From Carpediemonas membranifera BICM (taxonomy: Eukaryota > Protista > Fornicata): DNA of 64,000 nucleotides. Shown piece after piece: positions 1-58,656 of this stretch; the first letter of the stretch is position 1, and every line of letters begins with the position of its first letter. Both the position numbers and the translations under genes were made by a program. The notes under the pieces are model-generated. The model was given only the letters and a program-made list of their open reading frames with translations. It searched no databases and was not told the DNA's origin. The stretch covers positions 124,001 through 188,000 of the forward strand of contig JAHDYR010000069.1 of NCBI GenBank assembly GCA_019828565.1, read 5' to 3'.

Positions 1-19
1 TATCATCAGCCACACGGGC

Positions 20-1021
20 ATGACTGCCACATCAGCCCGCGATATTGATGTGAGCGAGCTCCAGATTCCCCCGGAACTCTCTGACTGGTTGCTATTCACC
101 GGGGCACCATCTGCGATGTCCGCTGTGATGCCTAGCACCTTCTCGCAGGCTCTCAAGTCGGTCGGGCTGAGTGTTAACCAGCTTCGCTATGCGCCCACTG
201 TGCATGTCGATCTCAATCAGCTCAAGAAGCGGGTGATTGAGACACAAAGACGGACTGGCAGGCCCAGGGATCCGATCAAGGTTCGTAAGGTCATTAAGGA
301 CAAGCGCATCAGCCTGACCGATGAGCAGTTCAGGCATCAGTTGGCGTCCAGTCACTTAACGACCACGCGGCGCCCAACGATCCTCGATCTCAACCCGGAG
401 ATCCGAAGCTCTGCTGACCTGGTGCCGCCGACGCTCGATGACTGGCTTTACAACAAGCTCAGGATTAGGATGGTCCAGCTCCACGACCAGCGTAAGCCCG
501 AGGGGGGCGACACGGGGGAGGGTGAGTCTGACGATGAGGCGCTGTTTGACGAGACAGCTGGCGAGGCAGAGATGCCGGAGACCGCAGTGGAGGGCGAGTT
601 TGACGATGAGGCCGGGTTGGAGATGCTGGAAGGAGAGTGGGAGGATGAGGAGAGTTCAGACAGCGATGCCGAGGATAGCCTCGTCGACAACCTGTCATTT
701 GTTCAGTCACAACAGGTTGAGTGTGATATGTCTGAGAGAGATACCGATGAGGGTGTCCGTAGCGGGGCCAATGGAAGTGGGCTCGCTCCGCTCTATGACG
801 CTATGAAGACCAGGGAGCCCAGCAGACGCATTCGCCTTCGCCGCTATCACGAGAGCGAGTCAGACTTGGGCAGCAGCAGCGACAGCGAGGACGGGATGCC
901 GAAGCTGCCCGTTGAGGCCTTTGAGCACATCCGTGATGCCGGGATGACAACTGTGAGGCTGACGAGGGCCGAGTATGACGACCTGATGGAGAAGAGAGAG
1001 CAGGAAAAGCACCAGAAGTAA
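20..1021 (+). CDS. Hypothetical acidic low-complexity protein, possibly 5'-partial. It may continue through a frameshift and a stop into 1029-1650.
   Basis: 333-aa ORF with D/E-rich tracts. ORFs 1029-1274 and 1353-1811 share one frame and are separated by a single stop. Confidence 0.5.
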   Translation: MTATSARDIDVSELQIPPELSDWLLFTGAPSAMSAVMPSTFSQALKSVGLSVNQLRYAPTVHVDLNQLKKRVIETQRRTGRPRDPIKVRKVIKDKRISLTDEQFRHQLASSHLTTTRRPTILDLNPEIRSSADLVPPTLDDWLYNKLRIRMVQLHDQRKPEGGDTGEGESDDEALFDETAGEAEMPETAVEGEFDDEAGLEMLEGEWEDEESSDSDAEDSLVDNLSFVQSQQVECDMSERDTDEGVRSGANGSGLAPLYDAMKTREPSRRIRLRRYHESESDLGSSSDSEDGMPKLPVEAFEHIRDAGMTTVRLTRAEYDDLMEKREQEKHQK

Positions 1022-1646
1022 ATGGCGAGTGATTATCAACTGGATGCAGAGGCTGAGCGGCGTAACTAGCCTGCCAGGGTCCGTGTACACAGTATGTGTC
1101 TTGGCCAAGCTTGACTTCGTCGGTTGGCCGAAAAAGCATAAACTGCACGGGTCCAGGTCGGCAACCGTTGCCGACCTGGAAGCCGCTCCTTGGGCGTTGA
1201 AGAACAGAAGAGAAAGCGATCAGCGATGCTTTTATGCAGTATTAAGCAGGTTGTGCGCGTCAAATGTCCGGTAATGCATTCGTCACCATCTAATCAACAT
1301 CAACTCTTTTTCTCGGCAATGCAGAGGAGAATGCCCGTCACTAAAGGATGATTTGGTACTAACAGGCTTTAATAAGCATGTCAAGCCTGTGATCACGATA
1401 ACAGCCTTCAATAACTACATCAAGGCAATACATCAAGAAGATTGTTTAAAGAGACGGCGGGGAGCAAGATGCAGGGAGAGCGGCAGGGAAACGAAGGCAT
1501 GGGGACAGGAGCCCGAGAAGAGCGCCTGGAGAACGGTGAGGAAGAACGGCGGGGAAGAGCAGCCGGGCGCATGGGTACACACATCTGTCATCATGTGGCA
1601 TCAACATTGCCACAGTGGTCAACTCAATAACAAGCAATGTCTTCAT

Positions 1647-2928
1647 TTACTCACTGTTCTGGATCACCAATTCGTACGACGAGTAACAGTCGGGACAGAG
1701 CCGAATCTTGGGAATCGACTTGCCACAGATGACAATCTTCAGCAGCTCCATCTGTACGCAGTTGGCAGAGTTACAGAACCAGTGCCCGCACTGCCTACAG
1801 TGCACGGCTGAGTCGTTGCGTCGGCATGCGTAACACTTCTTCTCATTGAGGCAATAGCTACACGTGTATTTCCAGCGACCCTTAGTGGACTCGGCCCAGT
1901 TCTTGTTCTTTCCAGTCTTAGGCCGGGGAGGGACACAGCGTGAGTTGTCGTGGAAGTTCACTTTGCATTCCTGGCAAGTCACAAACTTTGACGTCACGCG
2001 ATTGTCGATCCAGTCCAGACTGTGGCAATGGCCGCAACAGAAACAAAGCAGCCTATTCTGAATGTCGAGAATCGAGAAAGAATCATCACCGACCTCAGAC
2101 ACATCGTCATCGTTGTCCCCTTGGCTGGCCAGACGTGCCTCCACGGTGGCGAGCCTCTGATCGACACTCATCGCGACACGGTGAACATCGTGCAGCACAA
2201 TCGACTCGCGAGGCGCTTGAGGGGAAGCTGGAGAGGGAACCGAAGTGGGACCGGACGATGAGTGCAGGAAAGGCTCACTTTTCACGCAAAGCTTTTGCTT
2301 CACGTGTGTAAGGGCGGGGGTGGCAGGGTTGGGGATTTCAACTGTTCTGCACTTGCCCACAAATCTCTCCGGGTCATTGATATCGGGCACACAGAGATTA
2401 AAGTCTCGGGAGTCGAGATTATCTGGCACAGGAATATTGAGTCTCGACAGGACGGATCTGATCGCGCTGGTTAGCTCCGAACGGACTGGGCGAGGAGCTC
2501 TTGCAGAGAGCATGGACAACCTTGGGTTTCCCGTCAGATATGGCCACAGTCACCCCCATCGTCTCAGCCCAATCTCGGACGTTCTTCGCAACAACCCTTC
2601 CCATCGAGACGCCAGGTTTCAACTTCAGCTCATCGAGGAAGTCCGGTGTTTCGGAGCACGGCTGAAGAAACGACACGATGATGTGGTTGAACGCATTTCC
2701 GAGCTTTTTGATGGACAGGCCAGTTGGGTCTGAGTCAAAGACGTCAAACGCAAACGTGAAGAAGGCCTTAAGCATGCCCATCATGAGAATTGACCGGCAA
2801 GTACTCAAAGCGGTTGTGTTCCACTTCGTCATCGGTCTCGATCTCTTAGAAACAGCCTTAACTGCATGATCGTCCGCCATGTTCTCATTTACGGCCGCGC
2901 GCTTCGTTTCTAGCTCCGTTTCTGTCAT
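1647..2928 (-). CDS. PHD-like/Cys-rich zinc-finger protein, probably one gene split by a frameshift near 2420-2520
   Basis: CFCCGHC...FVTCQECKVNFHDNSRC...WKYTCSYC has PHD-like C4HC3 spacing. A second finger follows (CYAC..HCRQCGHWFC...C...LCPDC). The upstream ORF 2419-2928 overlaps on the same strand. Confidence 0.6.
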
Positions 2929-3025
2929 TCCAGAGTAGATTTTCTACTAAAAATTGGCATTGTTACAACCAATCATTAACATTAATAGAGAAGGAGAATA
3001 AAGACTCACCAGCCCGCGGCCAATC

Positions 3026-5567
3026 GTGACCCAGGTTCGCATCAGACGTCGAAAGAGACGAGTTAAACATGAGGCTGGGCAATTGTCTTCTGAGCTAATC
3101 CTTAACCTTTCAAAGAGGATGCTAATACCGAAGTGGACGCTATTACACGGCACTATTTATGCTCCTCAAGAGGATACTGGCATCAACACCATTCTATGCA
3201 GCGTGTACCTTTCCATTGACTCAGATAACGTCAGCACACATCGGTTTCGTGTTTCCAAAGCTCCCCAACGCCGTGAGTTCGTCCAGGTTGTTCAAGAGTT
3301 GCTCAGTGCAGGATATATATGTCGCCAGGATGTTTCAAAGCAGCTGTACCCCTCTCCGACTGCCACATCTATCGCTGCGGAGAAGAGGAATCACACGACT
3401 TACCCAAGAGCCTACGTGAAGCATACATCCGCAGTTGACACTCTCGCAGCCGAGAATGAGTGTCTACGGAAGCGTCTGGCCGACACGGAGCGCCTGATTC
3501 AACTAACGAACCAGCTCAAGTCCATCACAAACGGATACAATGCCGTTAACGACGAGATCCGCATAATGAACTCTCTTGCAGGTAGGCTTAACCTTGATAT
3601 TGTGCGGATATCTCCTGTTACCTCGAAGATCAAGTCTCTCGCGTGTAATATCCAGAATATGGAGGAGATAGAATCACTTCTCCAATCTGACACCGCTTGG
3701 AAGAGATTTATCCGCAGTCACGTTCCCGCCAACATTCAGCACAGGGTAACGGCGAGAAGGTCTGATCAGGCCAATCAGGAATATGAGCTCGACCTCATCA
3801 CCCATGTCGAAGCTCCTCTTGATGTTGTACGATCATCTATTCAGGGCGACTCGGCCCATGCAGAGCACGTTGCAGGAAAGATCGTCGTCTTCTATGACTC
3901 AGAGCAGGACCGTGAGACTCACTATAGCATCATGAAAGAGCAAGGCCTCACCCCTCGGATGCAGACGAGTGCAAGATATACCCATGTATATCATGCATCA
4001 TTTGATATCATGGAGTATTATCGCCAAGCGGTTGCATTCCCCGTATCGCTGGAGACGTCACGATCCGGGCGCAAGAGTGCAGCTCGGACATTAAGACGAC
4101 AGAGTCATTCCGCTGAGACGGGGACGATCCCACTCGTGTTAGAGTTGTGGGTCGATGCGTGGAGAGGGCTGACAACCGCTGTTAAGATTCGTTTCCTCGA
4201 CGACTCCCACAAAGTCTTTCCGTCTGGTGCGACTCCTCCTTTCCGGATTCTTGAATACAACGGCCCAGAAAGTCTCATCACTGAGCATTTTGCCTTCATT
4301 GAACAGTCCATCGAGAGCACACACCGCGAGGTGCTGGAAGTCAGGAACACGGGTCTCCTCTGCCGAGTAACGCGTGTCTTTATTATCGCTGACCATCCAG
4401 CCATGTCCAAGGTTTGCGGGGCACTCATTGGAGGCAATTACCCCTCGCCATTCAGTCCCGTTCATTCGAAGAACAAGGGCTGGAGTCCCTTTGGTCGCAC
4501 CCCGCGCTGCACCTTGGCAGATATCCTGCTGGCGAAGCATAAGTCACAGTTCGACACTATTATGGACAGAGAGGCCAAATGGGGATCCTTCTATAACCAT
4601 CAGAAGAAGTGCATCGCTCCCACTTTGTTTGAGACGTCGACTGCGTCGCTGCCCAGAGACTGCGTCTTCTTATTCCCTCCAATCATGCATGTCAGTCATG
4701 ACTTTGTGTCGTTGATTCATGCCATGTGCCGCATGTTCAAGCCAGAGCCAATTGACCCAGAGAGCGACCCTCGTCAAATTAAGGAGGTGAAGGAACGCGA
4801 TGCTAGCGAATCTGGCGTCGTTTGAGCCACCCAGCCGTACGACGGGCTGCAACGAGCAAGTCAAGGGGAGAAAGATGATAGCATCGATTGGACTTAAGCT
4901 GCATCGTGCGTTCCCGCCCCCCGTGCAGTCATTATTCATACTCGCTGCATACCTCCAGGAGCACTACTATTCCCACGAGGATGTAACTGAGAACATGGTC
5001 GTGTGGCATCGCTTGACAGCACTTCTCGTGCACCTCTTCTCTGTGACCATGTGTCTTAGCACATCTAACACGGTTGCCCCAGACATTCCGATCCGTCAAC
5101 CAGCTGCGACTCCCGATACGGCGCCGTGTGTTGATACACTTCACGGATTGGCGCGTATTGCCGCGCTGCCGGATATACAAGCGAAGACTCGGGCTTCCTT
5201 TGGTCGAGTCATCGAAGAGTGCTTTGAACGTGATTTCATTGGGAATCAGGAGAGTCGAGTGCGATTGCGTCAGAACCAGACGGTTCTTGAGAGCACTATT
5301 CTGAAGGAGCAGGTTGAGTTGCTGTTCAGATGCCTTCGTGGAGTGATTTCCTACGGAAGACGCGAAACAGATGTCCCACCCCAGTCACCCCTGAAACATA
5401 TGCGCATTCATAAGTGTTGTAAGGATGCCAATTGGTGGCTTCGTATCCGGAGTGTGCATTCTAAGACGCTGACAGCGACTGAGTGCCAAAAAGCTGCACA
5501 TGGTGTTTACGAAGGAAGTCAACGGCCTATGGCGCACTGTCTTGTCGAAAGCAGACTGTACCTTTGA
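3026..5567 (+). pseudogene. DDE transposase of the RAG1/Transib/CACTA-Mirage-Chapaev type, with a frameshift near 4800
   Basis: Motifs occur in the expected order: LELWVD (D, 4154), ILEYNGPES, FIIADHPAMSKVCG (D, 4391), YPSPFS (at the CxxC position), PTLFET...PPIMH, LH (5142), SFGRVIEECFE (E, about 5226). Removing 1 nt near 4799 joins EVKER to MLANLASF. Confidence 0.6.
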
Positions 5568-5677
5568 CTCAGACTGGCTGTATGTTCCCATTCACGAGCA
5601 GGGACACACTCTTGATGTTTGCATATGTAAGAGATAGTAAAGATCGGATTTAGTCTCGCGGTCAATCTCACGTGGCC

Positions 5678-5746
5678 CAGAGCAGCGTGCTCCTGGAATC
5701 AACAGGGCATAAAACACCCTGCGTATTCCGGTAGCACACCGTTCTG
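5678..5746 (-). ncRNA. Conserved bulged hairpin, a candidate structured RNA or ssDNA element
   Basis: The minus strand CAGAACGGUGUGCU-A-CC-GGAAU-AC-GC-AGGGUG-loop-UGCCCU-GU-UG-AUUCC-A-GG-AGCACGCUGCUCUG folds as one long stem. It is homologous to the hairpin in the 535-bp unit. Confidence 0.5.
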
Positions 5747-6717
5747 ACTCATACGTCCGTCTCTGGTTGTCGTATACAGGTCTATTTACGTGTTTGGCGA
5801 TGGCGCTCCCTTAAATCTGCTTGAACAGCGTGTCGTGGCTGTCAGTATGCTGCAAATGTCTCAGCGAGAAAGGAGTCACCAATCGCGTTCAGCTTTCTTG
5901 TTTCTCGCCTGATAAGGCTCGTAATATCGTTCAAGCGTGAATCTATGAAGTAATGGGACTGAATGGCCTCTATTGCGTCAATTTCTTGCGTAATCGTTGT
6001 TGAATGGCCTAGAATAGATGTTGCAGCTGCTTCCAGCTCCTGTTGCATAGTATATGCTGTGTTTTGGATAATTGGTCGTGTTCAGGCAGAATTTTTTCGT
6101 GCAAAGTGCAGGCTAATACGCGCCCTTAAACTGTGGGATCAGCCGATGGGTAAATATACTGAGAAAAAACCATATAGCTGAGTTCACTGTCTTGTGCTGA
6201 ATACGGTGGTGCCATTTATTTCTCTGAATCGCTAAGTTTTGTCAGCGTTGACCGCGCACGACCGGTCGTCCTTACGCGATGTCACCAACACCATCATATT
6301 CTTCCCCCCTGATATTCTACGTGTCCCCCAGTCTGGATTCGTGGTCTGCAATATTCACAGAGATATTCGCCTTCTCTTTCGCGAATTTGACTCTGATCAA
6401 GTCGAAAAACGAAAAAACGACCATATCTCGAAATCTACACGTTGGAATCGGTACCAGAGTGATTTTGCGCATATGTACATCCCGTCAGCAGTCTGCAAAA
6501 TCACTCTCATACCGATTCCAACGTGTCAATTTTGAGATATTGCTCGTTTCATCGTTTTGCCTTAACCTGCGTCGCAAAGAAGTCGAAATCAGTGCTTAGA
6601 CCGCACTGTACCTCTTTACAGGCTCTCTGCATACGCGCTTTAGTATGCAATGAAGGTATTCATTTTCCCGTAAATTGTTTAAATTCAATGAATACTTCAT
6701 TTTCGGTCCGGAAGAAA

Positions 6718-6774
6718 TAGATAATCTAGGGTTTTTAGGCCCTAGATTATCTAGAAAAAATCGTAGATTATCTA
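6718..6774. repeat. Three subterminal palindromic motifs TAGAT(A/T)ATCTA
   Basis: Copies at 6718-6728, 6743-6753 and 6764-6774. The first two lie within a 14-bp inverted repeat (TAGATAATCTAGGG / CCCTAGATTATCTA). Confidence 0.85.
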
Positions 6775-6789
6775 CCGACTTTCACAGTA

Positions 6790-7754
6790 TGAGGAGCTGG
6801 TTGGTCGGACGGCCAGGAGCTGCAGCCACTACTTGAGGTCTGCTGTGTAGGGGTGGATGTCGACCCAGTTCTCCGTGGCAGAAGGGAGCGTGCGGAGCTT
6901 CAGGGTAGCCCGTCTTGCAGAGGTGGCGAAGAAGGAGAGCTTGCCTACGATCTTCGCCCAGTCTTTCGCGCGGATGCGCTTCTTGACGAGTGCTTCTGAT
7001 AGGGCCTCTGCGTACCTCTTGGCCTTGTCGGCGGGGAGACGGATGGTGTTGGACGTGGTGTTCAGGAGCAGGCCAAGGAATTCTATGCACTGGCACGGTG
7101 TTAAGATGCACTTCTCCAGCGACGGGATGAGGCCCAGTGCCTCCATCGTCTTGATGATCTTGGGTATTTCCTTGCTGAGGTGGTCTCTGCTGTCGGCTGA
7201 CAGTAAGAAGTCGTCGAGGTAGACGTTGATGATTACCTTGTGGCGGAGGCGATGACCTTTGCTACCTGGACCATAGCGGACTGGAAGAAATAAGGCGCGG
7301 CGGTCCAACCGAAGCCTAGCGTGCGGTATTGGAACGCCCGACCGTCGGGCAGAGCGATGCCCAGGAGCGGTTTGTCCGAGTTTCTGATGGCCAGCTGTGA
7401 GTAGCCGGATCTTAGGTCTATCTTGGCCATCCAGGCCTGGCTGGAGAGTGTGTTGATGGCACGACGTATGCCGAACAGACGGAAGGAGCGGCGTTCGCGT
7501 GTGACCGTGTTCAGTCGCCTCAGGTCGTGGATCACTCTTATGTCTTCCCCCTTGGGGACAGCAAACAGCGGGGCGCTGTGCTTGAGCTGACTGAGGGGCG
7601 TCGGCTCGATGATTCCTTGTTGTGTCATTGATTCGAGCTTCGGAAGTATCCTCGGGTCGATGGTACTCTGTGGTGCTGCCGGTGGTGGAGGCGCTGTGAT
7701 CTCTACGGGGATTCCGTCTCGTACCCACGCTACTACTGCTGGAGATACCCTGAA
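6790..7754 (-). pseudogene. DIRS-type (tyrosine-recombinase retrotransposon) reverse transcriptase fragment
   Basis: Reads GIIEP..APLFAVPK..RVIHDLRRLN..AKIDLRSGYSQ..YRTLGFGWTAAPYFF, then a frameshift near 7240. It continues VYLDDFLL, EKCILTPCQCIEFLG, IRLPADK and DLK*W (LxWW motif with TAG). No RNase H or recombinase is present. Confidence 0.85.
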
Positions 7755-7757
7755 TTA

Positions 7758-10527
7758 CCTCTGGCTGATTCCAGCAGTTTGGCACAGCCGGGTCCCTTGT
7801 CCTCATTTGCGCATTCGCATATGATGTTTGAGGTGAGTCATAACGGTTTCTCCTGCAACCACTCCTGATCATGTTCTGTTTCTGTTGCTGGTAGTATTCT
7901 CCTTTCTCTGGTAGTTTGTCTGACAGTGCTATGCCATATGCGCGACCGTGTGGCGGTGTGGTGCTACCGGAATACACGGGGCCTTCCCCTCGTTGATCCC
8001 AGGAGTGCCATATCCCTACCTGGCCGTCATATGCTCGTGACTGTCCTGCTGGGTTGCGCTATTTTCTCTGTGCCCTCCCGGTGCGTTCTTTTTGCTGATA
8101 GTTTGGTTGTCCCCTCATGACCTACTCTAGCTTGTAGTTGTTGTGAACTTTTTCCAGCGCTCTGATTCCTGTTCTGAGTCTTTCCCATACCTCTTTCGAT
8201 CTCCAGAGTAGCAGCTGCCAGAGTTTGCGTGTGGGTCGCTCGCTGTACCACCATCCTTGCGGTCCTCGTCTAATAGCCATGTGCTGGTCTTTCCTCTGGC
8301 TGATTCCAGCAGTTTGGCACAGCCGGGTCCCTTGTCCTCATTTGCGCATTCGCATATGATGTTTGAGGTGAGTCATAACGGTTTCTCCTGCAACCACTCC
8401 TGATCATGTTCTGTTTCTGTTGCTGGTAGTATTCTCCTTTCTCTGGTAGTTTGTCTGACAGTGCTATGCCATATGCGCGACCGTGTGGCGGTGTGGTGCT
8501 ACCGGAATACACGGGGCCTTCCCCTCGTTGATCCCAGGAGTGCCATATCCCTACCTGGCCGTCATATGCTCGTGACTGTCCTGCTGGGTTGCGCTATTTT
8601 CTCTGTGCCCTCCCGGTGCGTTCTTTTTGCTGATAGTTTGGTTGTCCCCTCATGACCTACTCTAGCTTGTAGTTGTTGTGAACTTTTTCCAGCGCTCTGA
8701 TTCCTGTTCTGAGTCTTTCCCATACCTCTTTCGATCTCCAGAGTAGCAGCTGCCAGAGTTTGCGTGTGGGTCGCTCGCTGTACCACCATCCTTGCGGTCC
8801 TCGTCTAATAGCCATGTGCTGGTCTTTCCTCTGGCTGATTCCAGCAGTTTGGCACAGCCGGGTCCCTTGTCCTCATTTGCGCATTCGCATATGATGTTTG
8901 AGGTGAGTCATAACGGTTTCTCCTGCAACCACTCCTGATCATGTTCTGTTTCTGTTGCTGGTAGTATTCTCCTTTCTCTGGTAGTTTGTCTGACAGTGCT
9001 ATGCCATATGCGCGACCGTGTGGCGGTGTGGTGCTACCGGAATACACGGGGCCTTCCCCTCGTTGATCCCAGGAGTGCCATATCCCTACCTGGCCGTCAT
9101 ATGCTCGTGACTGTCCTGCTGGGTTGCGCTATTTTCTCTGTGCCCTCCCGGTGCGTTCTTTTGCTGATAGTTTGGTTGTCCCCTCATGACCTACTCTAGC
9201 TTGTAGTTGTTGTGAACTTTTTCCAGCGCTCTGATTCCTGTTCTGAGTCTTTCCCATACCTCTTTCGATCTCCAGAGTAGCAGCTGCCAGAGTTTGCGTG
9301 TGGGTCGCTCGCTGTACCACCATCCTTGCGGTCCTCGTCTAATAGCCATGTGCTGGTCTTTCCTCTGGCTGATTCCAGCAGTTTGGCACAGCCGGGTCCC
9401 TTGTCCTCATTTGCGCATTCGCATATGATGTTTGAGGTGAGTCATAACGGTTTCTCCTGCAACCACTCCTGATCATGTTCTGTTTCTGTTGCTGGTAGTA
9501 TTCTCCTTTCTCTGGTAGTTTGTCTGACAGTGCTATGCCATATGCGCGACCGTGTGGCGGTGTGGTGCTACCGGAATACACGGGGCCTTCCCCTCGTTGA
9601 TCCCAGGAGTGCCATATCCCTACCTGGCCGTCATATGCTCGTGACTGTCCTGCTGGGTTGCGCTATTTTCTCTGTGCCCTCCCGGTGCGTTCTTTTTGCT
9701 GATAGTTTGGTTGTCCCCTCATGACCTACTCTAGCTTGTAGTTGTTGTGAACTTTTTCCAGCGCTCTGATTCCTGTTCTGAGTCTTTCCAATTCCTCTTT
9801 CGATCTCCAGAGTAGCAGCTGCCAGAGTTTGCGTGTGGGTCGCTCGCTGTACCACCATCCTTGCGGTCCTCGTCTAATAGCCATGTGCTGGTCTTTCCTC
9901 TGGCTGATTCCAGCAGTTTGGCACAGCCGGGTCCCTTGTCCTCATTTGCGCATTCGCATATGATGTTTGAGGTGAGTCATAACGGTTTCTCCTGCAACCA
10001 CTCCTGATCATGTTCTGTTTCTGTTGCTGGTAGTATTCTCCTTTCTCTGGTAGTTTGTCTGACAGTGCTATGCCATATGCGCGACCGTGTGGCGGTGTGG
10101 TGCTACCGGAATACACGGGGCCTTCCCCTCGTTGATCCCAGGAGTGCCATATCCCTACCTGGCCGTCATATGCTCGTGACTGTCCTGCTGGGTTGCGCTA
10201 TTTTCTCTGTGCCCTCCCGGTGCGTTCTTTTTGCTGATAGTTTGGTTGTCCCCTCATGACCTACTCTAGCTTGTAGTTGTTGTGAACTTTTTCCAGCGCT
10301 CTGATTCCTGTTCTGAGTCTTTCCCATACCTCTTTCGATCTCCAGAGTAGCAGCTGCCAGAGTTTGCGTGTGGGTCGCTCGCTGTACCACCATCCTTGCG
10401 GTCCTCGTCTAATAGCCATGTGCTGGTCTTTCCTCTGGCTGATTCCAGCAGTTTGGCACAGCCGGGTCCCTTGTCCTCATTTGCGCATTCGCATATGATG
10501 TTTGAGGTGAGTCATAACGGTTTCTCC
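7758..10527. repeat. Tandem array of a 535-bp unit, about 5.2 copies
   Basis: Units start at 7758, 8293, 8828, 9362, 9897 and 10432 (partial, 96 bp). The copies are near-identical, with a 1-bp deletion near 9160 and two substitutions near 9790. Confidence 0.97.
7955..8014 (+). ncRNA. Conserved bulged hairpin in the repeat unit (also at 8490-8549, 9025-9084, 9559-9618, 10094-10153)
   Basis: GGUGUGGUGCU-A-CC-GGAAU-AC-AC-GGGG-CCUU-CCCC-UC-GU-UG-AUCCC-A-GG-AGUGCCAUAUC. Several G-U pairs favour the + strand. Confidence 0.5.
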
Positions 10528-10624
10528 CTTCCTGGGCCTTCCGTGTTCAGCTTGCTGTGTTGGTCGTGTGTTTAATTAGCGTGGTGTAAATGTAAAGGCT
10601 ACGTGTAAAGGTTATCTGTAACGT

Positions 10625-28592: not shown

Positions 28593-30221
28593 ATGGATTC
28601 TTTCATAACTTCTTCTGTGGACGTCAACAGGGTTCTTATCGACGCCTATTGTCTTGCATGTTCAAGCACGGCGAAAATCCCCGGCGATGTGCCTTCGCTT
28701 CTGTTTCACGCATATTCACGGCACTCTGGCAGCCCTATACGCCCCATTCATGCCACTGACGCCAGCTCACACTCAATGGGTGGCACTACGATTGAATCCC
28801 TCCATGCGATGATTGTCAGGATCCCCCCTCTCGAACCAACCGCGCAAGCCCTCCTCGACCGCGCCCGCTCGATCCTCACCAGCGGCCCCCCGCTGTCCAT
28901 GAACGTCGAGCTCGCGGATGGCGAGGACCTCCCGGTCGCCCTGCACACGCTGAACCAAGGCGCGGTGTGGGCGTGTCTGCTGGGTGGCGGGGCCAACCCA
29001 GACCTCGAGGACAGGGCGCTGGATGAGGCTCACGAGAAGCAGCTAGGTAATACCGATATTCATAACAGAATCCGCAATGCTCTCACCCCAGAGGCCAAGT
29101 GCCTCTGGTTTCTGTGCCGCAAGTTCTTCTTCACGCTGAATGTGGCAGAGAAGGACGGCAAGTGCTATCAGCACTGTTTGAATGGATTCTATCACCACCG
29201 CATGTACATGGGTCGACTCTTCATGCTCGACACAAAGCACCACACCGCCCTCACCAGGGCCAGAATGCCCAGGGCCCTTGAGGTCTATAGCGACGGGTTC
29301 ACCCACATCGCCAGGACACCCAAGGGCATGTGGGGCTGGGGTGAGAGCGATTATGGCCAGCTGGGGTTCAGGTCATTAGCATATCGCGAGTTCGTCGACC
29401 CGACCCGCCTCACCTTCCCTGCTTGCCCCAAGATCGCCGAGCTCGAGGCCAGTCTACCATCTTGGGAGAAGCACAGGATGGTGATCAACGTGTCGCTAGA
29501 CACATATGTCACATTCATTCACACCCCAGTCGGCATTATTATGACTGGCCGAAGATCCGTTTGGTATACAGGCGATATCGAGGAGGAGAACAAGTACCGA
29601 TTCAACCCAGTGGCGGTGCCATTCGACTTTGTACCAGATCGCATCATGCATGGACGAAATAACGCAGTCATCCTCTCCATGGGCGATCGGCAGGTGATCA
29701 CCGGGCACAACGAGTGTGGCCAGCTGGGACTCGGGCACAAGCATGATATGACTGGGTTCGTCGACCTGCCCTTCAGGGTCTACCGGGTCATGTCAGGCAT
29801 ACACTTCAACATATTCCTCAGCGGCCGCCAGCTGCTCTATGCCGGACAAGTTCCCCGTCTTATCGCCCACTCGGGCCTGCTGCCTGGATACAGCGAGGGC
29901 GACATCTGCCTTACAGCCACCCCGCTCCGCTTCCCAGATAGGGTCAAGGCATTTTTTGTTACTTTTCTCGATCTGATCTGGGTCACGGAGGGCTGCACAC
30001 ATCTGTGCGACTATGACAAGCAGTTGTCTGTGTCCGCTGAGGCGACTGCATTTGAAAGAGTCAGGGTCGATGGCCGATGGGCCCACCCGTTCCGTGCCTC
30101 CACTGGCCAGTGGTTTGAAACGATGTGTGTGTCAGATGGGGCAGGGTTGACTGAGTGCGAGGCACCTAAAGATCCGGACGAGCTTATTCCCGTCGACATC
30201 GACCCGGCCACTGCCCCATAA
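28593..30221 (+). CDS. RCC1-like repeat family protein, paralogue A
   Basis: MWGWGESDYGQLG and GHNECGQLGLG repeats; paralogous to 33492-35126. Confidence 0.8.
   Translation: MDSFITSSVDVNRVLIDAYCLACSSTAKIPGDVPSLLFHAYSRHSGSPIRPIHATDASSHSMGGTTIESLHAMIVRIPPLEPTAQALLDRARSILTSGPPLSMNVELADGEDLPVALHTLNQGAVWACLLGGGANPDLEDRALDEAHEKQLGNTDIHNRIRNALTPEAKCLWFLCRKFFFTLNVAEKDGKCYQHCLNGFYHHRMYMGRLFMLDTKHHTALTRARMPRALEVYSDGFTHIARTPKGMWGWGESDYGQLGFRSLAYREFVDPTRLTFPACPKIAELEASLPSWEKHRMVINVSLDTYVTFIHTPVGIIMTGRRSVWYTGDIEEENKYRFNPVAVPFDFVPDRIMHGRNNAVILSMGDRQVITGHNECGQLGLGHKHDMTGFVDLPFRVYRVMSGIHFNIFLSGRQLLYAGQVPRLIAHSGLLPGYSEGDICLTATPLRFPDRVKAFFVTFLDLIWVTEGCTHLCDYDKQLSVSAEATAFERVRVDGRWAHPFRASTGQWFETMCVSDGAGLTECEAPKDPDELIPVDIDPATAP
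28820..29474 (+). repeat. 655-bp direct repeat, copy 1 (copy 2 at 33719-34373)
   Basis: Colinear at offset 4899, with only 2 mismatches seen by eye. Confidence 0.93.
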
Positions 30222-33491: not shown

Positions 33492-35126
33492 ATGAGCAGC
33501 ACCAGTTCCTCGTCAGTGGCTGTTAGAGATGCGCTTATCTCTGCATTCAATCTTTCAGTTGCCATCACCGCCTCCATTTCCGGGGACATCCCCTCGCTGC
33601 TCCACCACGCCTACTCCAGGCACTTCGGCGAGCAGATGCCCTCGATCCACAATACAGATAGCACTTCTGCACCAACGAGCGCCGTTTCTCTCGATTCCCT
33701 CCCCGCCACGCTCTCCAAGATCCCCCCTCTCGAACCATCCGCGCAAGCCCTCCTCGACCGCGCCCGCTCGATCCTCACCAGCGGCCCCCCGCTGTCCATG
33801 AACGTCGAGCTCGCGGATGGCGAGGACCTCCCGGTCGCCCTGCACACGCTGAACCAAGGCGCGGTGTGGGCGTGTCTGCTGGGTGGCGGGGCCAACCCAG
33901 ACCTCGAGGACAGGGCGCTGGATGAGGCTCACGAGAAGCAGCTAGGTAATACCGATATTCATAACAGAATCCGCAATGCTCTCACCCCAGAGGCCAAGTG
34001 CCTCTGGTTTCTGTGCCGCAAGTTCTTCTTCACGCTGAATGTGGCAGAGAAGGACGGCAAGTGCTATCAGCACTGTTTGAATGGATTCTATCACCACCGC
34101 ATGTACATGGGTCGACTCTTCATGCTCGACACAAAGCACCACACCGCCCTCACCAGGGCCAGAATGCCCAGGGCCCTTGAGGTCTATAGCGACGGGTTCA
34201 CCCACATCGCCAGGACACCCAAGGGCATGTGGGGCTGGGGTGAGAGCGATTATGGCCAGCTGGGGTTCAGGTCATTAGCATATCGCGAGTTCGTCGACCC
34301 GACCCGCCTCACCTTCCCTGCTTGCCCCAAGATCGCCGAGCTCGAGGCCAGTCTGCCATCTTGGGAGAAGCACGAGCTTGTAGCCGCCGTATCAACAAAT
34401 GTGCTAACCACCTTCATCCTTACCCCAGTCGGCGCAGTCGTGACCGGCAGAGGATCGGTAATGTACGTTGGTCCCGTCAGCAACGAGCATCGCTTCCACC
34501 CTGTACATGTACCGTCCGACTTTGTCCCAGATCACATCGGCCTGTATGGAACTACATGCATCCTCTCCATGGGCGATCGGCAATTGATCTGCGGAGATAA
34601 TTTTTTTGGCCAGCTGGGACTCGGACACGATAGGGGCGAGATGACAGCATTCGAGGAGCTCCCGTTTTGGGTCGACCAGCTGCTGTCTTCCTCCGGTAAT
34701 ACAAACGTCTTTCTCAGCGGTGGCCAGCTTTTATACGCGGGCCGGATTTCCCAGCAGATCGCCCAATCGGGCCTCCTTCCCGGATTAATGAGGGACGCGA
34801 AATGCCTCACAGCCGCCCCACTCCGTTTCCCGACGCGTATTACCGGATGGTACCTTGATACGTTTCAAATGGTTTGGGTTTCTGCGGGTATGACCCATTA
34901 TGTCGACATTTCTACCAAATTCGAGGTCCCTTTCGAGGCAACCGCGGTGAGTCTGCCGCACATTGACCTGACAAACCATAGCCGATGCTTCCGCGATAAG
35001 TATGGCCAGTGGTACGAAGCGAGGAAGATGGTGCGCGGCGTGGCGAGGATGAAGAAGTATGAGGGGGTGCCGAGGATGTGGAGCAGTGTTATTGAGGTCG
35101 ACGCGGGTCCGGCGATCGGTCAGTAG
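33492..35126 (+). CDS. RCC1-like repeat family protein, paralogue B
   Basis: Same motifs as paralogue A (WGWGESDYGQLG, GDNFFGQLGLG). Confidence 0.8.
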   Translation: MSSTSSSSVAVRDALISAFNLSVAITASISGDIPSLLHHAYSRHFGEQMPSIHNTDSTSAPTSAVSLDSLPATLSKIPPLEPSAQALLDRARSILTSGPPLSMNVELADGEDLPVALHTLNQGAVWACLLGGGANPDLEDRALDEAHEKQLGNTDIHNRIRNALTPEAKCLWFLCRKFFFTLNVAEKDGKCYQHCLNGFYHHRMYMGRLFMLDTKHHTALTRARMPRALEVYSDGFTHIARTPKGMWGWGESDYGQLGFRSLAYREFVDPTRLTFPACPKIAELEASLPSWEKHELVAAVSTNVLTTFILTPVGAVVTGRGSVMYVGPVSNEHRFHPVHVPSDFVPDHIGLYGTTCILSMGDRQLICGDNFFGQLGLGHDRGEMTAFEELPFWVDQLLSSSGNTNVFLSGGQLLYAGRISQQIAQSGLLPGLMRDAKCLTAAPLRFPTRITGWYLDTFQMVWVSAGMTHYVDISTKFEVPFEATAVSLPHIDLTNHSRCFRDKYGQWYEARKMVRGVARMKKYEGVPRMWSSVIEVDAGPAIGQ

Positions 35127-55035: not shown

Positions 55036-55368
55036 TCAAACACGTTCGCGGAGCCCTGCTGGCTGGGCGTGTTATTCTGCGAGGTCGGCATGGCGAGCCG
55101 ATGATCTTGGACTAACCTGCGTCGGCCTCAAGCGTCATTTACAGCATCATACAGAGACCTCAGTCCATGCGTGGGAACGGCTCTGCTCCGCCCGGCGACC
55201 CGCTGCTCCGGGGCCGGTTACTCTCCCACTGCGCGAGCGTCCTTCCCCGCCCCACCCACGTGGGCTGGTTCGGCACCTCCACGCGCCTTGGCTGCGGGTT
55301 GGCAGGATAAGGCCCCGTCTGCACGACCCGGCTCCGGTTCATGACGTTCATGCCCATGATGCCCGCCC
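55036..55368. repeat. 333-bp inverted repeat, copy 1 (copy 2 at 57660-57992)
   Basis: Reverse-complement identity; identical peptides appear in the ORF track on opposite strands. Confidence 0.95.
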
Positions 55369-57554: not shown

Positions 57555-57936
57555 AAGTGTTTATATGTGTGTTAAAGTGCTATGTATACGTGGTATTAGG
57601 CTGTGTTTAGATCAGTTTTTGGTTGCCTGTCTAGTGAAGAAGGTTTGTTAATTCGCTACGGGCGGGCATCATGGGCATGAACGTCATGAACCGGAGCCGG
57701 GTCGTGCAGACGGGGCCTTATCCTGCCAACCCGCAGCCAAGGCGCGTGGAGGTGCCGAACCAGCCCACGTGGGTGGGGCGGGGAAGGACGCTCGCGCAGT
57801 GGGAGAGTAACCGGCCCCGGAGCAGCGGGTCGCCGGGCGGAGCAGAGCCGTTCCCACGCATGGACTGAGGTCTCTGTATGATGCTGTAAATGACGCTTGA
57901 GGCCGACGCAGGTTAGTCCAAGATCATCGGCTCGCC

Positions 57937-58656
57937 ATGCCGACCTCGCAGAATAACACGCCCAGCCAGCAGGGCTCCGCGAACGTGTTTGAAACACCAG
58001 ATAGTAGAGAAACGCCATCAACAACGACACTTAATCCCAATCACACTCAATCCACGCCGGTTCAGACGAATACTGGCCAACAAGGCCAAGCAGCAAGCCA
58101 AACATACGAAAGATGGGACGATGAGCAAGTATACCGTGACGTAGAGGATCTTCTTCGAGCCCCTGCCAGGTCCACGCCAGCACGCCAGCCAAACCAGCGT
58201 CGTCGACGCCGCGACGTGTTTATGGACAGCGTACGGCCGGTAATAACCTCACCAGAGTTCATATCATCAGTCACTAGGCTCACCCAAGGTGTTCTGGAGG
58301 GGGCATCGGCCGCTCTATTTGGCCCCGGTAGTGTTTCTGCCGAAGGCGGTATTTTCTCTGACTTCATGCCGATGCTCAGCGAACAATTCCTCGAGAGAGT
58401 CCCGGTTCCCGTGCCCCAGAACGAGCTTGAGCTCATCCCGGTCGTCTCCTTCCGCCCCGGCATGTTTGCCTCTGACCCGACCTGCGCAATCTGTCGCGCC
58501 GACTACACGTACAACGAGAACATCAGAGTACTACCCTGCGGCCACCACATGCACCAGCGCTGTGTGGATGTCTGGTTCGAGACGAGAAACACATGCCCCA
58601 TGTGTCGGGAGCGGGTGGCTGCTTGCATAGAGCAGGGCGTGGATGACGTTGACTGA
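57937..58656 (+). CDS. RING-H2 E3 ubiquitin ligase
   Basis: CAICRADY...LPCGHHMHQRCVDVWF...CPMCR. Confidence 0.92.
   Translation: MPTSQNNTPSQQGSANVFETPDSRETPSTTTLNPNHTQSTPVQTNTGQQGQAASQTYERWDDEQVYRDVEDLLRAPARSTPARQPNQRRRRRDVFMDSVRPVITSPEFISSVTRLTQGVLEGASAALFGPGSVSAEGGIFSDFMPMLSEQFLERVPVPVPQNELELIPVVSFRPGMFASDPTCAICRADYTYNENIRVLPCGHHMHQRCVDVWFETRNTCPMCRERVAACIEQGVDDVD

Follow-up and report, generated by a model that had tools for sequence, protein, structure and literature searches.

An undescribed structured RNA motif carried antisense by unrelated selfish elements of Carpediemonas membranifera

Introduction

What is a hairpin that recurs in two otherwise unrelated mobile elements, in which form does it act, and what would it do for its carriers? 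These questions were raised by the window analyzed here, the whole stretch of 64,000 nucleotides at C68:124001–188000 (contig C68) in the genome of Carpediemonas membranifera BICM (24.2 Mb, 69 contigs). One copy of the hairpin lies in a Transib/RAG1-like DNA transposon, and five lie in a tandem array of 535-bp units nearby. An earlier note on this DNA had proposed an undescribed functional RNA or single-stranded DNA (ssDNA) motif shared by different elements. An undescribed structured RNA motif was indeed found; the parent element given to the array was wrongly assigned. The hairpin belongs to a real, undescribed and so far lineage-restricted structured RNA family that occurs across unrelated selfish elements.

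Copies of the hairpin

The transposon hairpin occupied positions 5678–5746 on the minus strand (core 5690–5735). The same hairpin was confirmed on the plus strand of all five array units, at 7955–8014 (core 7963–8005, extended stem 7935–8033), 8490–8549, 9025–9084, 9559–9618 and 10094–10153. The flanks of the transposon and array hairpins did not align, as the earlier note had observed. Inside the window alone the match between the two was modest (blastn E 0.08); the stretch common to both gave a local alignment score of 42, higher than all 300 dinucleotide shuffles (maximum 35).

Further copies were sought genome-wide with three non-overlapping exact patterns, each with control searches. The patterns matched 231, 85 and 111 times, giving at least 427 copies, and the controls matched nowhere; two-sided covariation was found as well. 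The copies fell into at least 15 sequence types, of which the transposon type accounted for about 45 copies, and a covariance model upheld 149 of 150 scored candidates. The invariance of the core is partly a product of the search patterns; the L043 and L059 copies came from the covariance model and not from the patterns. Variants of the C1/C42, C4/C54, C8/C22/C57, C1 655-bp, C6 1084-bp, C3, C16, C30 and C40 types were kept out of the alignments and models and were judged by eye. Beyond the genome, viral, metagenome and prokaryotic collections were scanned for the pattern and gave 0, 28 and 16 matches, respectively. None had the full upper stem, and the best reached 29.8 bits vs. 56–86 bits for true copies. 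Because these matches were preselected by the pattern, lacked the full upper stem and scored low, they were taken as chance, and the motif was not found outside C. membranifera in these collections.

A conserved structure on one strand

From its base upward, the hairpin comprises a variable lower stem, the sequence GCUA, two C-G pairs and a bulged A on the 3′ strand. Above the bulge follow a five-pair helix (GGRAY/RUYCC), a 2 × 2 loop of AY opposite YG, and an upper stem of 5–9 pairs closed by an apical loop of 4–7 nt that is free in sequence. The internal loop had been described as an invariant AC/UG; it is A-Y opposite Y-G, once A-G, and its pyrimidines vary. Two bulged As had also been called invariant. 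The one on the 3′ strand was retained, whereas the 5′ A does not form a single bulge in a helix: the C-G and U-A pairs below it are broken in the L043 subfamily of long interspersed nuclear elements (LINEs), which indicated that CUA is conserved as sequence and not as a one-bulge helix.

Pairing and covariation were assessed in an alignment of ten referenced sequences from about six lineages. Pairing cells amounted to 94%, compared with 85.7% in shuffled and at most 53.5% in slid alignments. Eight pairs changed on both sides, with a covariation score of 0.378 vs. 0.215. In the core helix, the third pair changed from A-U to G-C and the fifth from U-A to C-G, and all four combinations were present in the search outputs. 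The two-sided changes bore out the earlier statement that differences mostly preserve pairing; array unit 1 has an A-C mismatch where other variants pair. Since the ten rows represent only about six lineages, the covariation is supportive and is not a formal test.

The G-U pairs were found to pick one strand, as had been noted: with one representative for each of six lineages, there were 20 G-U vs. 3 A-C cells. Folded as RNA, the minus strand of the transposon hairpin reached −39.4 kcal/mol (z −7.6) vs. −32.2 for its plus strand, and the array hairpin reached −25.6 kcal/mol (z −2.4) vs. −21.7 on the opposite strand; two L043 copies were weak as RNA folds (z −1.1 and 0.3). As DNA, three of four variants folded no better than shuffles (z 0.2, −1.4, and 0.2), and the transposon copy had a z of −5.1. 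On these predicted folds, RNA was favored over ssDNA as the active form.

Rfam, searched at gathering and E-value thresholds, returned only unrelated weak matches and no family for the motif, which agreed with the earlier remark that it matches no known consensus of a ribozyme or small nuclear RNA. Together, covariation, strand and the lack of an Rfam family strongly supported an undescribed structured motif common to different elements.

Several known families were considered and rejected. For the hammerhead, CUGANGA was absent from both strands of six contexts, and there was no Rfam match. One hammerhead-like core, its helix II pairing perfectly over 4 bp, was seen elsewhere, at C5:403534–403563 on the plus strand, once among the first 100 pattern matches. 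A ribozyme like that of hepatitis delta virus (HDV) did not fit either, as the motif is a single helix with a freely varying apical loop, not a double pseudoknot, and again had no Rfam match. The hairpin ribozyme consists of loop A (AGAA opposite NGUC) and loop B; a UGUC 4 × 4 loop occurred in C21 and in some transposon copies, but its facing strand had no equivalent of G8, and the LINE copies lacked the loop. Twister-sister or twister-sister-like ribozymes were rejected because GCUCA and the 6 × 5 loop are absent at the motif. U5 small nuclear RNA (snRNA) was rejected on freely varying loops, the lack of an Sm site and the lack of a match to RF00020, which was not detected anywhere in the genome. 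A 5S ribosomal RNA or 5S-derived origin was not supported by any match at the motif; the canonical 5S lies on C23. ARAGORN found no transfer RNA (tRNA), and the B-box-like stretch, which pairs with an A-box-like stretch, varies at the equivalents of T54, T55, and A58, which spoke against a tRNA-derived short interspersed nuclear element (SINE) or a type 2 promoter of RNA polymerase III. Lastly, a selenocysteine insertion sequence was rejected on a single A-G pair rather than the tandem quartet, on the antisense placement and on the lack of an Rfam match.

Carriers of the motif

The array (7755–10527) consists of about 5.2 units of 535 bp with 99.7% identity and occurs at no other place in the genome. 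On its minus strand, at 8122–8465, lies a remnant of the C terminus of a second open reading frame (ORF2) of the type lacking long terminal repeats (non-LTR) (tblastx to L059, E 9e-26, 39–43% identity), which is homologous to the LINEs in L059 and L043. The remnant runs from the second half of a CCHC knuckle to a stop at 8124–8122 with one frameshift, and it recurs in every unit; no frame of the unit contains the knuckle's first Cys pair. By this similarity, the 535-bp unit is identified as the end of a LINE ORF2 plus the start of its 3′ untranslated region (UTR), with the motif antisense to ORF2 and 117 nt beyond its stop. The ORF2 similarity gives out where the following extended hairpin has its 5′ foot, and the unit junction is accordingly inferred to lie at 8462–8490.

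The earlier note had taken the array for part of the adjacent reverse transcriptase (RT) element. That was ruled out, as the array is a LINE 3′ end and the segment 6792–7756 (minus strand) is an internal fragment, cut at both sides and without the motif, of a separate dispersed DIRS-like RT/RNase H element, of which 19 loci searched held no motif. As in the window, motif-bearing LINEs were joined to DIRS-like copies at L043:2538 and L059:1501; such junctions possibly reflect a target preference or simple clustering.

In all 21 compared pairs of ORF2 end and motif, the coordinates placed the motif antisense and 58–120 nt beyond the stop of ORF2. It is present in at least five subfamilies of LINEs (100, 67, 55, 44, and 42% amino-acid identity to L059), and several LINEs have two copies 130–225 nt apart. 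At five loci (C1:593704, C8:1014037, C24:134008, C24:211580, and C56:34755), LINE-type copies were paired about 1076 nt apart, which suggests a fixed tandem derivative of the 3′ end. At least seven array types carry the motif, with periods of 278, 421, 535, 548, 572, 655, and 1084 bp; the motif variants in these arrays differ from the one in the 535-bp array.

The C8, C22, and C57 arrays have about 100 nt in common with three short C21 copies, including a second hairpin and the same 3′ boundary. One of these C21 copies lies within a SET gene duplicate that is rearranged and truncated, and the C21 copies look like dispersed fragments and not proven host genes. It was also considered whether the motif at L061 marks the end of a trans-spliced half-intron; this was rejected, as the AWS piece there duplicates, in truncated form, an AWS-SET gene that is intact on C16. 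The C21 3′ tail was considered as an snRNA end signal and was not found after the U1 candidates, which lie on C17. The genome contains over 20 SET-domain genes, nearly identical and scattered, which are probably transposon cargo.

Transcripts of the motif strand

Transcript evidence came as contigs from four small runs of one sample, presumed to be RNA, and neither levels nor circles are readable from them. RNA of the motif strand exists, and some of it is uncut: a plus-strand transcript leaves the array and ends at a poly(A) site at 10575–10605 (poly(A) loose end at 10598), with the hairpin of unit 5 intact. A unit-length contig was explained equally well by a linear poly(A) RNA and by a circle. 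In every context read, the motif becomes RNA only if transcription runs antisense toward the main ORF or beyond a poly(A) site; for the relative Giardia, pervasive antisense transcription has been described (PMC1885649). As to a pre-miRNA or Dicer substrate, which RNase III would process to an RNA of 21–26 nt, the genome encodes two Piwi-domain genes, and no RNase III domain was detected in it. A literature search found no paper on ribozymes or trans-splicing in C. membranifera.

The transposon and other features of the window

The right part of the large Transib/RAG1-like transposon occupies 1–6791 and continues past the window start. Its end is sharp at 6791 (CATACTG on the minus strand), and the flanks are unrelated in other copies. 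The transposase lies in two frames on the plus strand at 3026–5567, and an intact copy of 815 aa (P0001) is annotated elsewhere. It had a feature score of 0.92 as a RAG1/Transib-like transposase, and the assignment is taken as a lead. On the minus strand, 5842–6048 holds a 68-codon ORF of a transcribed family: the complementary DNA (cDNA), whose contig represents a diverged copy, begins at about 6085 and receives its poly(A) at about 5775, some 30 nt before the hairpin. Sites with GTAAA, which resembles a poly(A) signal, follow the transposase (5637, plus strand) and the 68-codon ORF (5785–5789, minus strand), and downstream of stop codons GTAAA was overrepresented, being present in 9 of 23 genes. 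The hairpin thus occupies the gap between the convergent poly(A) signals of these two genes, and the transposon subfamilies part ways right at its 3′ foot.

The transposon right end also contains a 46-nt inverted repeat (6423–6540), the arms of which co-vary between subfamilies, and subterminal palindromic repeats that adjoin the end (6718–6791) and are probably transposase binding sites. Further inward, 1–1440 and 1647–2928 contain a 1097-bp internal repeat with a 333-aa ORF, which forms arrays elsewhere too, and an ORF, Cys-rich and PHD-like, which in another subfamily is the one facing the motif. One transposon copy (C16:719851–721536) has an insertion of about 450 bp within the 3′ strand of the motif. 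In the rest of the window, a perfect inverted duplication of 333 bp (55036–55368 vs. 57660–57992) and a gene pair with 84% identity (28794–29935 vs. 33693–34831) were observed.

Possible function

We tentatively propose, with rather less than even confidence, that the motif is an RNA-cutting element that serves as a cis-acting processing module of selfish DNA. This reading was ranked first because ribozymes are the structured RNAs for which a distribution over both retrotransposons and satellites is documented (PMC6765202; PMC7229834; bioRxiv 10.64898/2026.07.22.740005). Antisense transcription into the LINE 3′ UTR, or read-through past the poly(A) site of the 68-codon gene, would produce an RNA that folds into the rod and might be cut at the motif. 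The cut could be made by the RNA itself, which would then be a small self-cleaving ribozyme of a structurally new class, carried backwards by unrelated retrotransposons and a DNA transposon, that cuts antisense RNA and seeds retrozyme-like satellites; this is possible but on balance doubtful. Alternatively, a host nuclease might read the CUA, bulged A and A-G/Y-Y features and cut there, which appears improbable. Either cut would halt the antisense RNA before the main ORF of the element and may shield that ORF from silencing; the two Piwi-domain genes and the antisense transcription of Giardia would fit such a benefit. It would also yield defined ends, which might occasionally be ligated or reverse-transcribed, with retrozyme-like tandem arrays as a by-product. 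From foot to foot, the motif passes as a module among element classes that are unrelated, a movement that could fit a protein-independent unit. Further points in favor are the antisense position behind the ORF2 stop in all 21 pairs, the place between convergent poly(A) signals in the transposon, the frequent double copies 130–225 nt apart, the array types, at least seven in number, and the 535-bp junction at the 5′ foot of the hairpin.

Several observations weigh against cutting. The motif stands uncut in a cDNA contig of 643 nt that begins at a 5′ adaptor (9979) and reaches the array's poly(A) site; the variant in this contig has a core mismatch. Along the unbranched rod, the conserved bases that are unpaired or mismatched number just about six, no tertiary partner was found, and the cores of known small ribozymes are larger. 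About 1 kb of LINE 3′ UTR beyond the motif would be left unprotected. An abundant LINE subfamily at 64% identity had no motif at any of six copies searched with a loose pattern, nor a hammerhead where the motif would sit. Moreover, the junction was mapped for only one array, and the genome also holds motif-free tandem arrays.

The uncut motif in polyadenylated cDNA also favors a protein-binding site without cutting. A host or element protein would then protect, export or package the antisense RNA or block an exonuclease at the hairpin foot, or the motif would be a decoy against Argonaute silencing. Piwi genes are present, and invariant paired bases (here CC/GG and GG/CC) and a rod that is short and irregular are what protein recognition typically shows. 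However, no partner protein was identified, packaging signals of retroelements are normally on the sense RNA, and the use by a DNA transposon is unexplained unless the protein belongs to the host. We consider protein binding somewhat unlikely. The ~100-nt unit with a shared 3′ boundary and second hairpin, in the three C21 copies and the C8, C22, and C57 arrays, would suit a discrete small non-coding RNA of ~80–100 nt, either a gene of the host or the precursor of a small RNA, with a possible promoter inside it, which was captured by elements and amplified in arrays. This is distinctly unlikely, given that the 3′ part is absent from the LINE variants, the B-box positions vary, tRNA, 5S, and U5 gave no match, and no RNase III domain was found in the genome; the C21 copy within the rearranged SET duplicate leaves no clean host gene.

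Tandem amplification recurs around the motif, which would be expected of an ssDNA hairpin that favors local amplification as a priming, origin-like or recombination signal. LINE first-strand cDNA shares the motif polarity, the transposon copy folds as DNA too, and C. membranifera reportedly lacks canonical origin proteins. The G-U-rich stems, together with the three variants that fold as DNA no better than shuffles, make such a role highly improbable. Inverted repeats can self-correct, and the motif might accordingly be a neutral relic, a quasi-palindrome spread by captures with its symmetry kept by hairpin-mediated correction; the LINE subfamily without the motif would be consistent with that. 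But correction would erase bulges, mismatches and G-U pairs, yet all of these persist beside flanks that have diverged past alignment, and this least probable of the explanations is already ruled out in the main.

New classes of natural self-cleaving RNA are rare finds, and the proposed cutting element offers more than 15 natural variants of a ~50-nt core as a candidate. Even without catalysis, a single RNA structure kept antisense by LINEs, a Transib-like transposon and satellites points to a shared, undescribed interface of selfish DNA with RNA metabolism in a metamonad.

Comparison with known systems

Rnt1 is a system in which RNase III directs termination at hairpins. Another is Pac1 (PMC8421224). 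RNase III termination hairpins resemble the motif in lying downstream of or across genes, where they could trigger cleavage and termination. In contrast to these systems, no RNase III domain was detected in the genome, and the conservation of the motif lies in mid-stem and not in the loop.

The HDV-like ribozymes of R2, L1Tc, RTE, and SINEs are, like the motif, a portable RNA module found in several non-LTR lineages (PMC6765202). They are, however, sense double pseudoknots at the 5′ end, whereas the motif forms a rod on the antisense strand of the 3′ UTR. The twister-sister-like "lantern" ribozymes of LINE-1 and OR4K15 have an unbranched stem/internal loop/stem with a dispensable apical loop, and one of their strands shares GCUA with the motif (PMC11620745). 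The 6 × 5 lantern loop (GCUCAA opposite GCUAG) is absent in the motif, in which GCUA is followed by the CC/GG pairs, the bulged A and the 2 × 2 loop.

The non-LTR retrozymes and Penelope-like hammerheads (PMC7229834; bioRxiv 10.64898/2026.07.22.740005) resemble the motif in having a structured RNA in an autonomous retroelement and in transcribed arrays, a few hundred bp in size, that come from one end of the element. Their tandem units measure ~150–450 bp, and the motif arrays 278, 421, 535, 548, 572, 655, and 1084 bp. Unlike retrozymes, the motif has no hammerhead core (tested in the 535-bp unit), its parent is a LINE that ends in a CCHC knuckle, it is antisense to the ORF, and it also occurs in a DNA transposon. 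The motif arrays are not retrozymes by definition, though their distribution resembles that of one.

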